A DNA stretch of 63,318 bases, the filler included, from Choristocarpus tenellus KU-1152 (lineage: Eukaryota > Protista > Phaeophyceae): the NCBI GenBank assembly GCA_964200185.2. It is 9 parts of 9 records of this genome, joined end to end, with 100 filler letters (N's around TTAATTAATTAA, not from the genome) between each part and the next. Parts side by side here need not be neighbours in the genome. Positions count along the whole stretch, not along the records: positions 1 to 12,075 come from CAXNAD020001994.1; 8 more parts are not named here. One strand, 5' to 3'. Every line of letters begins with the position of its first letter. Position 1 is the first letter of the stretch. Positions 4,108-12,075 of this stretch are shown in pieces. A model generated the notes under the pieces. It made no database searches. It worked only from the letters and a program-made list of their open reading frames with translations, and had not been told where the DNA came from. The position numbers were made by a program, and so were the translations under genes.

Positions 4108-4614
4108 TCAACCTGCCGATAACGGAGTCACTCCTTGCATTAACACTAAGGGGAAGCATAAGCACACAGACCTGTGCATTCCATTCCCATGCTGGCTTTC
4201 TTGTGTAGAATGGTTCATGTGCGGTTCAGCGCCAATACGTGCCCCGACACCACGAGAATGTTCTGGCGGAGAAACGTCCACTTCCGCCATCTCCAGCTCC
4301 GAGACATCTGCACTCTGTAAGACATGAAGGGAAAGAGTGATACATATATTGGAGGGGATGAATAGAAAATAGGGATACACGGATACGGGACCAAATCCAG
4401 CTGGATCTACGGTCAGGTGGGAGAGTGTTGACTCCTGAAATGCATTCCAGTCAACACGAGGTTCAGGGTACGATGTCGTTCGTTTCATCATTCGAATAAT
4501 TGTGCATTGGGAGGCGGTCATCTGGACACTTACATGCGGCACTTCCACATCGACCCAGCTGTAGCGCATGGGTCCATTACCTCTTTCCTCCAGGGTCATC
4601 TCACACAACTTCAC
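4108..4614 (-). CDS. Possible exons of an unidentified gene, perhaps the 5' part of the SLC12 gene
   Basis: 168-codon open frame with an internal pyrimidine-rich stretch and cag acceptor (~4316) and a cacag|gtctgt donor (~4171). No recognisable domain. Confidence 0.25.
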   Translation of the reverse strand: MKLCEMTLEERGNGPMRYSWVDVEVPHVSVQMTASQCTIIRMMKRTTSYPEPRVDWNAFQESTLSHLTVDPAGFGPVSVYPYFLFIPSNICITLSLHVLQSADVSELEMAEVDVSPPEHSRGVGARIGAEPHMNHSTQESQHGNGMHRSVCLCFPLVLMQGVTPLSAG

Positions 4615-4756
4615 TACTTTATACCAACTGAGTGTTGTAAACGTTCTATATCAGTGAAGAAGGCCTTCCATGATTGGAAACACAGTATGATGTGATGGAT
4701 GACCGTAGATTGACTAATCACGGACAATACCATTTCCTGGTTGAACTGGTGTGGCG

Positions 4757-7420
4757 ATGACAGTTGATCACCATATCCCACCCAGTGAACGGAAAGTTGG
4801 GTATCGACAAGGGAAGACTGTAACGGTCCCCAGTTCCTGTACTGTTTGCTTGGAAGAGTTTCCAAGCAGGTGTGAGCAGTGTCAGTTTGTCTTCTCCATC
4901 CAGAATGTACACCTCGATGTTTCATCGTACCTTTTTTCGTTTATTTGACTTCTCTGAACCTCAGACTTTCCATAGACTCATCCACTGTTGAATGCTGTCA
5001 AGCTTCCAATTCCCCATCCCTGATCAACGGTGAACCTCGACCCTTGTGATGGTCATCAGGGGTGCACTATTCAGACATTTGAGAGATACCACAAAAACCT
5101 GCTCAGCATTTGCCGCGGAAAACGATAATGAGGGCGAGAAGTGCTTGATATCTTTCGGCTACAAGTGCAATACCGAGCTGGGCGTTTCCAGCGGTAACGA
5201 TGCTGGTTCTTTGCTCTTCAAAGCTGTGACAAGGGTGTCCACACAGGATACACCATGGACGGGAAACCACACTCGTGTGGGTTTCTCTCAGGCATCATCA
5301 AACCATGCAAGGCGGTGCCCGTGGCTCAATCAAGAGGCTGGAGTCCATGCTATGTGGGTGATCTACACACACATTAGTGTGTCTCCTCATTCCCTCTCGT
5401 TAGGTGTATGTGTAGTTGACGAACAACCTGGCATCCCCGCCACTCGAAGTTGGAAGGGATTACTCCACCACAAATTCACCTCATTGTTCAGATACGATTG
5501 TTTGGTCATGCCTCTACGATATTATGGCCTGACCGTTTACGGCCCACGCTCGGTCCCGAACGTAGGGCCGACACAGCTTGCCTACGCGCTCCGTCGGCTG
5601 TCCCTCCCTCGCAGGTCTTGGAATGGATAAGTGGAATAAATACCCATCTTGAACCCTTTGGGGTGAAGATCTTCGGAAGGATGAAGGTGCCGGCCAGCCT
5701 CCACGCTGAGCTGCATGCTACCAAACGACGGGTGGAATACCTCTTGCCAGCATGGTTAGTTGACCAGGAGGCCAACACCCCCTGGACTGATCAACCCCGA
5801 GGGAAGACATCTCTCTTGCCCCTTCTCCAGCGCCTGAGAATGAATGCCCTCAAACCATTCGGTTCATGTGGTACCGCTAAAAAGGGCGAAAACGGTTTTA
5901 AGCGACGGAGACGTCCTCTCTGGCACAACTTCAGCGCTGGAGCTGTTCCTCACAGCCCCTCTGTCGCCCGCCGCATGTACCGATTCCACTGTCAGGAAAT
6001 GCTGACTGTAAGGGGAGTAGACTACATCTGCCTGTCCATATCTGGTGATGCCTTCCTTGAACAGCAAGTTCGTGCCATGGTGGGGCTGGCTGTTGCAGCA
6101 GTGAGAGGATTGATCGGGGGCAAGGATGGTATTGCTGACAAGATAGCTGCCTGCTTTGACCCTAGTAATGTGGATTCACTCCTCCCCATCCCCCTTGCAC
6201 CCTTGGGAGTGTCATTTCTGGCGGAAAATGGTTATGCCTGGTGGCAGGGAAAACTGGGAGGTGTGCTCCTGTCACCTGGTGCTCCGAAGGTTGGTGGGGG
6301 GGGGAATGCTTCAGCACCTGCTGTCCTTGGTTGGAGTGATGAAGCTGCATACACAGCTGCCAGCGCATGGCGAAGTGATTTGCTCGACAGTGCAGCAGGT
6401 TGGTGGGAGGCAAGAGAGCTTGGTGCTGTTTGGCTGAGGGATGTCCTTGAGCCAGGTGCAGCAAAGCTGAAAGAGGCATTGAGGGTAATGCTATGGAGGA
6501 TGCCAGGAAGAGATGTACGACATGAAACAGTGATGGAGGGGATTGTATCGGTTGGTAAAAGTGATCAAAGTGCCAATGAAAACCTTCAAGCAATCATTTG
6601 CAGCCTGGAGACACCAAAGCCTGTTGTATCAGAGTGGCAAGCAGAAGTAGAACCATGCAACAGAGTCTCACCCCAGCCCCCCATCCGCATGGATGATGCG
6701 CCAGAGGTCTATCGTACAGTCCTGTGTCTACTCCGTGAGGCTGATGCCTCTGGTAAGTGGCCAGCCAGCACTTCAGGACGGCAAATGGTAATGGCCCCGA
6801 CAGCTAATGGCAAGCCAAGAAGGAGTGTGGAGTTGAGAGAGACGGGAGAAGAGGTGATTTATCAAAACAATCCAAGGCGTGGAGGTAAAGCAGGGATAGG
6901 AAAAGGTCGGCGCAGGGTAGGCAGTGCTGTTGAAGGTGTTGGCAAGTCATCTGAACGAAAAGATGATCAAGTCGGGGATGACAATGACACAGGTCGACCT
7001 GGGGGCTCTTTCACTGTGGGGTACTTCCCGTACCCAGCCCCCCCTCCCCAAGGAAACGCCCTCTTCCCTGATCTTGTGAGAGCAGCCTTTGCCCTTGAAG
7101 CTGCACTCATGCCTGATCGCCCTCCATCAAGCACCATTGCCATTAACCGGCACGCACAATTCCGACCACACACAGACAGTGGTGATGGCTCTGGGCAAAG
7201 TCGGAGTTTGATTGTTGGTCTTGGGGACTATGGAGGTGGGGAACTAGTAGTAGAAGGGGGGGAAGTTGACATTCGCTACCAACCACTTGAGTTCAACGGA
7301 TGGACACAGCGGCATTGGACTCTGCCTTTCTGGGGGGAGCGTTATAGTCTGGTGTGGTTCACCCCACGAGGGTGTGAGGACTTCGCTGGGGCTTTCTTGG
7401 ATAGCAGGGAGGTGCAATGA
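4757..7420 (+). CDS. Zinc finger + TruA/Pus1-like pseudouridine synthase domain (degenerate active site) + C-terminal 2OG-Fe(II) dioxygenase; exons ~4757-4869, 5060-5353, 5566-7420
   Basis: Phase-consistent GT-AG splicing gives CTVCLEEFPSR|GALFRHLRDTTKTC (Zn finger). TruA motifs: LISFGY, EAGVHA|MAD, INTHL, KRRVEYLLP, WHNFS, ISGDAFLEQQVRAMVGL. Dioxygenase motifs: H-T-D (7169-7177), LGDYGGGEL, H-W-T, R-Y-S-L-V. Start codon uncertain. Confidence 0.85.
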
Positions 7421-8141: not shown

Positions 8142-9138
8142 CTAACTGGGTACCTCTCCAGGAAACTTCTCCACTATCTCTGGAGTTCCACCTTCACTGC
8201 TGGGGACGGAATCATTTTCGACAGCAGTTGCCCCATCCAACCCCTGAGCAACGATTGGATCACCATTGGTAACCTCCTCAGTGCCCTCTTCCTTTTCTTT
8301 ATTGAATTGTGGTGCATGCATCAGTGTGCCTACAATGACGGCACCAGTGACCACCTCCAGAAGGCCATATGTGGTGTCTCCTCTGATATGTGCAGTGGGC
8401 CCGAGTGACAAGACATCAGTGCACGTCATTGTTCCCTCCACATTTCCGGAGATGACAGCTGAGGTGCAGACCACTGTTCCTTTGAATTTTCCACCTGATA
8501 GAAATGTTAGGTGGAGAGGAAAGCTGAGTGTTTCTGTGAAAATGTGAGCTGGTGTCCAGCCAATTTTCATGCTGCTTATTGCACGAGGAACTGAGAAGGA
8601 GAAAAACTATTTAATGTTGAACCGTCTCTTCTGCTGCCTGCCAAGTTCATTAACATTCCATTGACTAGCCTTGCGTAGCACTATCTCCATCCTCAAAATG
8701 TGCAGTTACATATTCCTATAGTGGTGTCTCGCAAGGGATATGAAGCAAGAGTGGTTGTTGGCAGATTGAATGAAACAATATCTATTGGAATAATCGTTGC
8801 TACAATTCTGAAATAGTGGCCCACCTTCCTTGAGGACGACGTATTTCGCATTGATGGTCCCATCGAAGTCTCCTTCCACAATTACGGCGTCGCAGTAAGA
8901 CACTTTGCCTTCTACGGTAACTCCGTGACCAACAATCAATAGGCGCTCGGTGCCTAGGGGAATAATTTTTTCCTCGATACAAGGGCCAAATATGTTGGCA
9001 GGGCTCGGATCTGGAAGTGGAGCTCTACTGTTTGCTACGGGCTCTTTTTCTGGCACGGTGATTGGGCTCACCACTCTTGGAGGGGTGGAGGGTTTCCTCA
9101 CAGGTGCTGGTGGTGTCTCCAATCTCTGAGGTGGCGCA
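8142..9138 (-). CDS. Bactofilin (polymer-forming cytoskeletal, CcmA-like beta-helix) domain protein; exons 9138-8825 and 8494-8142; further 5' exons likely (e.g. ~9945-9812)
   Basis: Spliced translation LIVGHGVTVEGKVSYCDAVIVEGDFDGTINAKYVVLKEG|GKFKGTVVCTSAVISGNVEGTMTCTDVLSLGPTAHIRGDTTYGLLEVVTGAVIVGTLMH has bactofilin VxG/IxG periodicity. The phase-1 GT-AG intron 8824-8495 joins the halves in frame. Confidence 0.85.
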
Positions 9139-12075
9139 CTAGCGAGGCAAGAAGATTTAAGGCCAAGAGAGTGTTGAACAAGGTATCGGTGGTGCATTCA
9201 ATCGAGTTCAACTAATCGTGCGTCACCCCCTCACTAAACACAAGTGATCTGCACTTCAATATTCTAGATCTTGTAAGACGGAGGAACACAACGGCTGGGA
9301 GCAAACTATGCTCAGTTCTTTCCAAGAAATATGGGGTGCACTCAACAGGGTCTAGTCGCTGATTCCGGAGCAGCAGGCGAAAATTTGACGTATCTCCCAT
9401 GCTTCTAATCCTGTTGCAATCTCAATGTCTCCCACCAACGAAGATTCAACTTGAGATGGTGCCATCATCGCAAGTCCATTTACTTTCGTCGCAATCCCTC
9501 CACCTCGCCCTCACTCCTGCATTTCCTCTGCCTCCGGCATCTCTCTTCCCATTCCACCTCTCGCTTACATCTCTGTCCATGTTTGTCTTGGTATGCATCT
9601 ATCCATACCATTCAAACTCTGTTTTACACCACACCACCTAAACCTCACAAATATCGCAATACCTCTCACTAAGCCCTCCATAAATTTCATCGATTTTACT
9701 CTGTCCCAAAATTTGACTACCAGAAGACAGAGACTCCGACGGTGTAGTGAAGGGCAAGGAAGGTCAACCAACGCCTCTCAGAATGACGCTACTGTGACAC
9801 GAACATACCTGCCAGATCTCTTCGAGTTCCTCTTCCTCGACCGCATGGCTGGATCCCACGCTCTTTGTAGTATTCAAGGTTATAGGAGATGGAAGATGAA
9901 CTTGGACTCCAGGACTTCTTACAAGTTGATGGGACTTCGATGAGTACACGAGGATAGAGGTAGCGGATACTGAATGTCTAATGCTCATGCATCTATCGGT
10001 AAAAGGGTTCTACTATGTAAATTAATAAGTTTTCATTATGTGATCACTCCTAGAAATTTGAATGGTCGTACAAAACGCAATAATAGTTCAAACCAATACA
10101 ACCAATTTGTACTCCAGACCAAGTCCAAAAAGGTATCAACTATTAGAACCTGCCTGGTTTCAGGTCCAATAGGTTTCCATAATATTTGACTCTTTTGCTC
10201 ATGATTATAGAAGGCTAATTTTCTTGGAAGAATTTCGACATTCCATTAAAAAAAAAAGGTACCTGATACGATCACAGCCTGGTCTGAACTTGATCATTTT
10301 TGTCACCGTGTCGAGGAAGAGAGTGGCTAGACAGATGAAACAAGTGAAAAACGATTATTTCCACAACCTAGATGTATATACTATTATAAACCTTCAGGTG
10401 TTACATTGTGTGCTCACAACCTCATTCTTGTGATCATTTGTGCTTTGCCCATCATGGCAACATACACCCACTCACTCACCTCTATCTCCTATCCGTAATG
10501 CGAGAACCATCTCTACTGCTAGCACATGCATGTATGTGTATCCATATCGACCTTGCATTAAAAATTGATTGTTTGTCTCCCCACCACGACAAAGCAACCG
10601 AAATCAGTCCGTGCACACCTTCCTTGTTACCTAGCAAACAATACACATGCATACATGCACGTCAACTCTTTAAAAGGTGGCTGTATCACCAGCACCCATT
10701 CATAGTTACACAGCACTTGAAGTACAGAATAGTCTTTTACGTCTTATTATTCAGAAGAGGGGTGCGCACCGGCACCTGTTTGAAAATGCAGCTTGCTGTT
10801 AGTAACACACAAATAATGCATTTAGCAACCTGCAACAACAAACGAGAACAGCATATACACTGACGAAACGAGGTACAAAATCTCATAAATACAAAAGCAC
10901 GTAGGTGTACATGGTCAGTGACACACCAGAAGCAACAAGGGGAGGCAGTAACAGTCATGCCTGATGCTGACACGCTATATTTCGCCGTGCAATAGCATTA
11001 CCAATTTGGACAAAAAAACAACTAGGAGATCAATTGTCCGACAGGATTGTTTTCGCCATGACAAGCGTCTGCTCTCTCCTCCTGTATATTGTGCTGCATG
11101 GTAGTAATAGAAGTCGTCTGATCAAGTCACACATGCCAAGAGTTGTAAGGGACATTTTACAAAAAGAAAAATAAGAACACCACCAACAACTTCAAAAGGT
11201 CACGCCCATCAAACAGGATGATGCATTGATTCAACATGCAGTACTAGTCCTCCCTACGCCACTAACACATAGCAATCTTCATTCAATCACGCTAAACCAA
11301 CACGAACTTGCTTCAACAGCAATCGTTGCCCAATTATTCATTTGGGCAGTGCATTAGTTCAAGTCACCACACAACCACTTGACGAAGAACACCGAAGGGC
11401 TCATGAACAGAGTAACAGACGCCTCTTTTGTAAGGCTTTCATTAATACCAACTGTGACGCATGGTTGATGCAACCACTTGCTGCCCCGCAGCAGTTGCTA
11501 CAAATACACATTTACACACGTACACGTAGCACCTTAGAATGTCACTACAACATACACATATTCAAAACTGCATACCAATTGGCAAGTGGGGTACTCTTCA
11601 TTCTACAATCAGCTGACTGATGAACCACCAATCATCCACCCTTCAAGCATGTCAACATCTCTCTGTCCACACCAGTCAGGCCTCCTGCTTCTCCCAACAC
11701 ACAAGCAATCTCTCTTCATGGTTCAGTACCTGCGAGAACCCTCCCAACTCATTCCACCACTAGCAAGCCCTATTTTCTCACCGAGGACTTTAGAGCTCCT
11801 GGGGCTCATCCACTGTAACCAGCATCAATAATCTGCTAACAGTGCTCTACTTGCACCTCAATGACTCAAACACGCTTTGAAGGCTAGGGTACTATTAATA
11901 CTACTACTAATACCCTTACACAATCACCAAGGCCCAGTCCGCAAGAAACTCATCAACCAGCTCCAACCCCAATTACCCAAGAAAACACCCCTGTTCCACA
12001 AACCACTATCCAAGAGTCAACCCCCCCCCCCCCCCCGTAAATGACCCATCCCCCTCCCATCCCAGCTCGACCCCC

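Follow-up and report, generated by a model that had tools for sequence, protein, structure and literature searches.

The question raised by this locus is what a pseudouridine synthase-like domain does once its catalytic residues have been replaced and an oxygenase has been joined to it. The locus lies in a window of 63,318 nucleotides, the whole stretch of DNA that was analysed, whose numbering is used throughout; the gene is on the plus strand at positions 4757–7420, within the part taken from record CAXNAD020001994.1 (12,075 bp) of the brown alga Choristocarpus tenellus. In its product a C2HC zinc finger precedes a Pus1/TruA fold, after which conserved linker regions lead to a small 2-oxoglutarate (2OG)-Fe(II) dioxygenase. 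The reading that we favour, with chances that we judge to be about even, is that the product is an RNA-directed base oxygenase in which the Pus1-like domain is a targeting module that has lost canonical pseudouridine synthesis; for this reading we infer RNA as the substrate, loss of the isomerase and a base-oxidizing chemistry. No published description or biochemistry of a fusion between a Pus-like domain and an oxygenase was found in a full-text literature search.

Gene structure and domain order

The gene is transcribed and spliced according to a three-exon model, with the following features.

4757–4869, plus strand: exon 1, with the start codon, the N-terminal tail and the first half of the zinc finger (residues 1–37); GT follows at 4870
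4838–4840 and 4847–4849, plus strand: codons of the zinc-finger ligands C28 and C31, in exon 1
4870–5059, plus strand: intron 1, 190 nt, GT..AG, phase 2 (skipped in a contig of run X2, depth 295)
5060–5353, plus strand: exon 2, with the second half of the C2HC finger and the N-terminal Pus1/TruA-like part as far as NQEAGVHA (residues 39–135)
5076–5078 and 5100–5102, plus strand: codons of the zinc-finger ligands H44 and C52, in exon 2
5130–6283, plus strand: Pus1/TruA-like domain, residues ~62–375, split by intron 2, with HNF at 256–258 and QVR305xMVG (PF01416, phmmer, TIGR00071 and Foldseek)
5334–5336, plus strand: GAG codon of Glu130, at the catalytic-Asp position of pseudouridine synthases (TruA alignments)
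5354–5565, plus strand: intron 2, 212 nt, GT..AG, phase 2, partly retained in some transcripts (X2 contigs)
5566–7420, plus strand: exon 3, with the rest of the Pus1/TruA-like domain, the middle regions, the basic linker, the oxygenase and the TGA stop (residues 137–753)
5732–5734, plus strand: Val192 codon (GTG; motif RRVEYLLP), at the active-site Tyr position, TruA Y118 (PUS1 and TruA alignments)
6284–6979, plus strand: conserved middle region, then a variable basic linker (alignments and per-region identities)
6980–7393, plus strand: 2OG-Fe(II) dioxygenase domain, residues 608–745 (invariant HxD, H and R)
7169–7171, 7175–7177, 7313–7315 and 7340–7342, plus strand: codons of the oxygenase motif residues H671, D673, H719 and R728

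Translation exon by exon (4757–4867, 5061–5351 and 5567–7417) is identical to residues 1–37, 39–135 and 137–753 of an NCBI entry of 753 residues named 'unnamed protein product [Choristocarpus tenellus]' (P0001 below); the split codons AG-G and AT-G give R38 and M136, the TGA stop lies at 7418–7420 and the reading frame is intact. Both joints, 4869/5060 (190 nt skipped) and 5353/5566 (212 nt skipped), are present in Logan contigs of run X2, so that the junctions proposed in an earlier, sequence-only reading of this DNA are borne out by the identical protein and by spliced contigs. A single RNA-derived contig of the same run takes in exon 3 from 5566 onward and continues past 8000. Run X2 was judged to be RNA-derived from its spliced contigs alone, no RNA run being recorded for the organism, and runs X1 and X3 are genomic. 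A further X2 contig (5325–5595, depth 52, compared with depth 95 for the contig spliced at intron 2) retains intron 2, which leads to a stop at 5630.

The order of zinc finger, TruA/Pus1 domain, basic linker and oxygenase given by the sequence-only reading is upheld by profile, fold and motif evidence. Residues 28–52 form a CxxC-x12-H-x7-C finger that conforms to the C2H2-like ligand pattern; C28, C31 and H44 are invariant and C52 is nearly so in 17–18 full-length relatives, F35, F42 and L45 are likewise invariant in a set of 17, and in the AF2 model the finger adopts a beta-beta-alpha arrangement of two strands and a helix. It gave a weak profile match to the zinc-finger chain 2lvh (E 0.006), and zf-met and zf-C2H2_4 were matched weakly in relatives; Pfam returned no match for the finger of P0001 itself, nor for exons 1 and 2 up to E 10. 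The middle region contains the motifs GWSDE...AAGWWE...LEPGA and YxxVLxLLREADASGxWP, is 53–54% identical to its diatom counterparts and has no match in Pfam or NCBIfam.

Residues ~62–375 constitute a complete two-lobed Pus1/TruA fold, the family membership of which follows from fold and sequence together. PF01416 matched P0001 at 25.2 bits (Pfam cut-off 23.3), phmmer found human PUS1 (E 7e-9) and TIGR00071 aligned with residues 131–316 (E 1.8e-10) at 40.9 bits, below its equivalog cut-off of 142.85. An AF2 model of residues 25–400 (pLDDT 68, pTM 0.70) gave human PUS1 as its top Foldseek match (PDB code 4nz6, E 1e-14, TM by target 0.67, ~315 columns), followed by yeast Pus1, bacterial TruA, human PUS3 and Pus-like chains of the trypanosome mitoribosome assemblosome. 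The likeness to the Pus1/TruA synthases (human PUS1, 4nz6 and 4iqm; yeast Pus1, 7r9g; E. coli TruA, 1dj0; human PUS3) thus extends over the whole fold, with E-values of 1e-14 to 1e-8, and includes the shared motifs FGY, GVHA, RRxEYxxP, HNF and GxxFLxxQVRxMVG; the structural motifs FGY, HNF and GDAFLEQQVRAMVG noted earlier are all present in P0001. A profile of the N-terminal half had no match in the PDB, and hhalign of the family profile against the single E. coli TruA sequence aligned the C-terminal motif only (probability 22%). The suggestion that the fold binds the anticodon arm is without support, since its nearest solved relatives are Pus1-type, multi-site enzymes and not of the TruA/Pus3 type, which is specific to that arm.

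Catalytic positions of the Pus1/TruA-like domain

In (G)RTD-x-GVHA the catalytic residue is Asp, but P0001 carries Glu130 there, and in RxY(x)Y the active-site Tyr is replaced by Val192. E130 pairs with D60 of E. coli TruA, EAGVH lying opposite DAGVH, and the counterpart of QEAGVHA in T. thermophilus TruA (1vs3) is TDAGVHA. These local alignments are individually weak but concur with one another, with the match in fold and with the significant TIGR00071 alignment, which begins at residue 131. In the family profile the acidic column likewise coincides with TruA D60, and the residues facing T59 and R58 are Gln and a non-basic one. V192 falls on TruA Y118 (RRVEY against RRYRY), the profile reading RRvEYllP against ARTYCYLLP in human PUS1. 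The earlier assignment of a Glu codon at 5334–5336 and of a Val in RRVEYLLP to the catalytic Asp and Tyr positions is therefore supported by the TruA and PUS1 alignments. The domain thus differs from the known synthases in having Glu for Asp, Val for Tyr and no RTD Arg at −2; it also has ~8 extra residues after the conserved R122 together with long inserts, and it is fused to a zinc finger and a dioxygenase. An alternative exon bearing the Asp is rejected, as no RTD occurs in any plus-strand frame of 4700–5700 and only the two joints were seen.

Much of the cleft is nevertheless kept. R305 of EQQVRAMVG is retained and matches HQIRKMVG of PUS1 and HMVRNIVG of TruA, while the TruA-cleft residues R190, R191, HNF and R271/R272/R275 are invariant in full-length relatives, as would be expected for a conserved RNA-binding surface. 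D297 (6047–6049, in SGDAF) is invariant in 18 of 18 full-length relatives and lies in the strand leading into the QVR motif, at a place where PUS1 reads GQSF and E. coli TruA reads ANAF; from these alignments the cleft may hold it as a second acid peculiar to the family. Elsewhere in the genome, on another contig, a canonical TruA-family paralogue carries SGRTDQGVHA, so that ordinary TruA-family activity is supplied from there. This paralogue (locus L004, contig C263 of genome G000, at about position 756 of the locus) reads SGRTDQGVHARGQTVHF, and a third PF01416 match of the Choristocarpus genome lies on contig C21328.

The substitutions are only in part peculiar to Choristocarpus. The exon 2 equivalents of two brown-algal orthologues have ...RRCPLLEQEVEVSA and ...RRCPLLAQELGVSA, annotated Ectocarpus proteins read AQEEEVSA at the catalytic motif, and the chrysophyte/synurophyte relatives from Mallomonas and Chlorochromonas also have Glu. 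Most Glu-bearing relatives, including most brown algae, retain the Tyr (RRYEY), so that of the two changes the Glu is shared by brown algae and chrysophytes/synurophytes and the Val is not conserved among brown algae. Diatoms show the converse arrangement, with Asp in xQD..TGAITEV, the Tyr replaced by Val, Ile, Ala, Asn or Met, and the Arg of QVR displaced by one position. Over 86 relatives the column is always acidic (Asp in 65, Glu in 21), the adjacent positions being variable, and the combinations include D+V (35), D+I (20), E+Y (13), D+A (4) and E+V (3) but never D+Y, counts that are confounded by phylogeny and are not treated as demonstrated co-variation. Among the 258 proteins retrieved, a canonical motif (SRTDRGLHS or GRTDKGAHA) is carried by just two distant relatives, P0163 and P0199; RRRYE or RKRYEY comes after it, and the oxygenase that lies behind is the same.

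These distributions bear directly on the possibility that the gene is decaying or wrongly annotated, its odd residues being the result of lineage degeneration or of an artefact of the gene model. Such an explanation could draw on the restriction of the Tyr-to-Val change to Choristocarpus among the brown algae sampled and on the transcript that retains intron 2, but it conflicts with the spliced contigs that confirm the junctions, the intact frame of 753 residues, the exon 2 motif shared by orthologues, the numbers of relatives (342 word matches and 1611 clusters) and the very high conservation of the C-terminal domain; we assign it a negligible probability. Lineage-specific decay in particular is contradicted by the Glu of other brown algae and of Mallomonas and Chlorochromonas, so that the sequence-only reading, which such decay would have refuted, survives this check.

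The 'dead active site' of that reading stands as far as the substitutions are concerned. The deadness is an overstatement, given the invariably acidic position, the Asp of diatoms and the invariant cleft residues: from these comparisons the pocket looks remodelled and under selection rather than simply dead, and a loss of canonical isomerase chemistry is likely. We read the canonical motifs of P0163 and P0199 as a sign that the fusion began with a working Pus1-like enzyme, the pocket of which would later have been remodelled yet constrained in ochrophytes and dinoflagellates. The branching seen in a tree of the oxygenase is bush-like and too poorly resolved to order the loss of the RTD motif. 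The graded states of the Pus domain (canonical RTD with Tyr; Asp lacking Tyr; Glu with or without Tyr) offer a natural series from active site to binding module.

A remodelled pocket could also be a working one, in a bifunctional enzyme whose Pus1-like domain is still active with a Glu or Asp carboxylate and whose oxygenase acts on the same or a neighbouring nucleotide, possibly pseudouridine. The strictly acidic column among variable neighbours, the retention of R305, HNF and the RR motif and the invariant, family-specific D297 in an active-site strand are in keeping with this, and P0163 and P0199, with RTD and RxY before the same oxygenase, imply that the two activities were coupled in at least some lineages. 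Against it, the RTD Arg is missing at −2 in all non-canonical members, Asp and the Tyr118 equivalent never occur together in the 86 relatives, the QVR Arg of diatoms is shifted and the TruA halves evolve ~3 times faster than the oxygenase. Huang et al. reportedly found in 1998 that the D60E mutant of TruA binds tRNA but is inactive. In TruB, the R181K replacement lowers the rate 2500-fold (PMC3973310). On balance we consider a bifunctional enzyme unlikely.

Among the structural neighbours, the Pus-like chains FB and FC of the Trypanosoma brucei mitoribosome assemblosome (6sga and 9hny), which are significant Foldseek matches (E 1e-9 to 3e-7), are not known to be catalytic; structural or assembly factors, they show a TruA-family fold serving as an RNA-binding scaffold. 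They stand alone, whereas in the present protein the scaffold is joined to an intact enzyme domain.

The oxygenase domain and its fusion partners

The oxygenase set HxD...H...R described earlier is complete: H671-x-D673 and H719, which make up the iron triad, and R728-x-S730, whose Arg is the one that contacts the C5 carboxylate of 2-oxoglutarate, are all present in P0001, and none of the H, D, H and R positions varies among 89 diverse relatives, which also share a family-specific HxDSGxGxGQSxS loop. The domain is single-copy in the genome and is the best-conserved part of the protein, with 71–75% identity to the diatom and chrysophyte versions; between Choristocarpus and diatoms the values are 71% for the oxygenase, 24–31% for the TruA halves and 44% for the finger.

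Assignment to a named family is less direct. The C-terminal 150 residues have no match in Pfam up to E 10, the oxygenase has none in NCBIfam and, searched together with small relatives, none in PHROGs. Tet_JBP (PF12851) is matched by 36 of the 89 relatives, in all cases below the gathering score of 34.9 bits (best E 3.3e-4) and not by P0001 itself up to E 10, and 2OG-FeII_Oxy_3 (PF13640) is matched below threshold by six of the 89; the AlkB family (PF13532) is matched by none of them up to E 10, and AlkB-type membership is rejected on that ground. The enzyme had been expected to be a hydroxylase or demethylase; with this distribution of matches an AlkB-type demethylase is less likely than a TET/JBP-like hydroxylase. 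An ESM Atlas model of residues 605–745, which bears on the double-stranded beta-helix fold of the superfamily, resembles small uncharacterized viral proteins and clusters (TM 0.75–0.84), a minority of whose members carry Tet_JBP, 2OG-FeII_Oxy_3 or TAGT, the last reaching a fifth of the members of one cluster. No viral homologue was found by tblastn against 50,697 phage genomes or by a pattern scan of IMG/VR, and because these direct searches found no viral relative the Atlas neighbours are taken as a likeness in structure and features only.

Compared with the TET/JBP family (PF12851; TET, JBP, NgTET1, phage 5mYOX and the dinoflagellate CryTJ1 and AmpTJ1), the domain has the same HxD...H...R set, and the sub-threshold matches cover the catalytic core of the profile. 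It is, however, much smaller, it has its own HxDSGxGxGQSxS signature and its 2OG-binding Arg lies nine residues past the second His. By our judgement of these alignments it would best be described as a minimal 2OG-Fe(II) dioxygenase that has diverged and that stands closest to TET/JBP without being a member of that family.

The minority matches to PF13640 leave room for a different substrate altogether, a protein or small molecule hydroxylated by a prolyl-hydroxylase-like enzyme that the Pus-like domain tethers to RNA or the ribosome, as with ribosomal prolyl hydroxylases. Besides the six relatives, giant-virus clusters in the Atlas contain PF13640 in a minority of members, the H-x8-R-Y-S spacing resembles, on our reading of the sequence, that of prolyl-hydroxylase-type enzymes, and the aldo-keto reductase (AKR) fused in some relatives is of a type that reduces small-molecule aldehydes. 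Yet six times as many relatives prefer Tet_JBP, the domain is minimal (~135 residues) and lacks recognizable peptide-binding additions, and no other contextual tie to a protein substrate was found, so that we regard this as highly unlikely.

The oxygenase is widespread. A word search retrieved 342 proteins with the domain at 66–79% identity, among them proteins of Ectocarpus, Hapterophycus, Cyclotella, Pseudo-nitzschia, Nitzschia and Mayamaea, often automatically named 'TruA', and an exhaustive search gave 1611 representative clusters at 50% identity. The core of finger, Pus-like domain and oxygenase also occurs in dinoflagellates (Symbiodinium natans and Gymnodinium smaydae) and in Picozoa. 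An AKR5-type aldo-keto reductase lies directly behind the oxygenase in 19 of 258 proteins from dinoflagellates, Picozoa and environmental sequences (P0159, P0056, P0181, P0199 and P0200 among them), and in one form an R3H domain at the N-terminus and a Pus domain with the canonical RTD are present as well. Among solved structures, the fused reductase is closest to the trypanosomatid prostaglandin F synthase and YvgN. No aldo-keto reductase is present on the Choristocarpus contig that carries the gene (12,075 bp). Other architectures are R3H ... oxygenase with AKR and a RanBP zinc finger with oxygenase and ankyrin repeats, so that the RNA-binding modules found beside the same oxygenase comprise R3H, a RanBP-type zinc finger and a zf-met-like finger. 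Iyer, Tahiliani, Rao and Aravind are said to have predicted, in Cell Cycle in 2009, a set of algal 2OG-Fe(II) dioxygenases of diverse architecture that modify RNA. Their family, which we presume is probably the present one, is alike in its algal and protist distribution and in its architectural diversity (here TruA-like, R3H, RanBP zinc finger, ankyrin and AKR). We know of no description of the altered catalytic residues of the Pus domain or of the pattern of D/E against Tyr.

The same partners weigh on whether the substrate might be DNA, with the protein acting as a thymine or 5-methylcytosine hydroxylase in the manner of JBP, TET, 5mYOX or TJ1 and the finger and Pus-like domain directing it to DNA or chromatin. 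R3H, RanBP-type and zf-met-type domains typically bind single-stranded nucleic acid or RNA, RNA binding is the only role known for the Pus1/TruA fold and, to our knowledge, neither brown algae nor diatoms have high levels of 5-hydroxymethyluracil (5hmU) or 5-hydroxymethylcytosine. The case for DNA is that TET/JBP is the nearest named family, that the Atlas neighbours include phage proteins and the cluster with TAGT, that a C2H2-like finger is present and that the family occurs in dinoflagellates, whose divergent TET/JBP homologues (TJ1) produce 5hmU in DNA (PMC11572971). We hold a DNA substrate to be rather improbable.

Proposed function and genomic context

We return to an RNA-directed oxygenase. 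Judging by the fold, by the domains joined to it and by the enzyme family closest to the oxygenase, the protein would act on a nucleic acid, most likely RNA/tRNA: the C2HC finger and the Pus1-like domain would dock on a structured RNA, and the remodelled pocket would probably still hold a flipped-out pyrimidine without carrying out canonical pseudouridine synthesis. The minimal TET/JBP-like domain would then hydroxylate a C–H group of the RNA base using Fe(II), 2-oxoglutarate and O2; by analogy with TET/JBP this group might be the 5-methyl or other 5-substituent of a pyrimidine. The fused reductase of other lineages points to an aldehyde or ketone formed at a later step. A bolder extension, which we put forward tentatively and think doubtful, is that the product is an undescribed oxidized RNA nucleoside: the former synthase pocket, with its invariant D/E and its pairing of Asp with an aliphatic residue or of Glu with Tyr, would flip out and present a pyrimidine, the C5 substituent would undergo TET/JBP-like oxidation and, in dinoflagellates and Picozoa, an AKR5-type enzyme would process the resulting aldehyde or ketone.

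A parallel exists in ALKBH8, which combines an RNA-recognition motif, an AlkB-like 2OG oxygenase and a methyltransferase and hydroxylates 5-methoxycarbonylmethyluridine at the wobble position of tRNA. The proposed logic is the same, in that fused domains which bind or modify RNA carry an oxygenase to tRNA, where the C5 side chain of a uridine is hydroxylated, but the present oxygenase is not AlkB-like (its nearest family is Tet_JBP) and its targeting module is Pus1-like in place of the RNA-recognition motif of ALKBH8.

Several observations weigh against an RNA-directed oxygenase that has lost its isomerase. Oxygenase profiles gave only chance-level matches to PDB sequences, with no family match above threshold, and an AF2 model of the domain, built from a shallow alignment, had a pLDDT of 51 and non-significant Foldseek matches; the top ones were mostly 2OG oxygenases, with NgTET1 first and ALKBH8 (3tht) listed. 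The acid at the catalytic position is never lost in the 86 relatives, P0163 and P0199 are fully canonical and R305 is kept in brown algae, so that some residual or altered isomerase activity may persist. The characterized TET/JBP relatives, moreover, act mainly on DNA (PMC11572971, PMC13229309).

Upstream of the gene, the 801-nt RNA-derived contig that contains the joint between exons 1 and 2 also skips 4315–4533, whose CT..AC ends correspond to a GT..AG intron on the minus strand; either the assembly joined two transcripts or the gene has a head-to-head neighbour that overlaps its 5' end. An open reading frame at 4111–4614 on the minus strand has no Pfam match. Downstream and tail-to-tail, a bactofilin-like gene (PF04519; two open reading frame pieces, E 2e-11 and 4e-4) occupies 8145–9197 on the minus strand. 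Synteny is conserved here, since a bactofilin gene adjoins the orthologue in the same place in another brown-algal contig (L001, 5539–5769, minus strand), and the 3' ends of the two Choristocarpus genes probably overlap, as the RNA contig of the plus-strand gene extends past 8000. At 897–1286, on the minus strand, lies an exon for the N-terminal portion of a transporter of the amino-acid-permease/SLC12-like type (PF00324, E 4e-11).

The 2OG-Fe(II) oxygenases that act on RNA are few (ALKBH1, ALKBH3, ALKBH5, ALKBH8, FTO, TET on RNA and TYW5), and each has revealed a new layer of RNA biology. The present proteins form a large, strongly conserved and uncharacterized family, with a 2OG domain that has no Pfam model and a fusion partner that points to RNA, and they are distributed over diatoms, brown algae, chrysophytes, dinoflagellates and Picozoa, which include major marine primary producers. 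Since some diatoms are genetically tractable, the question is directly testable. Should the proposed oxidized nucleoside prove to be real, an oxidize-then-reduce pathway of RNA modification would have evolved from the fusion of a pseudouridine synthase with a dioxygenase in ecologically dominant algae.

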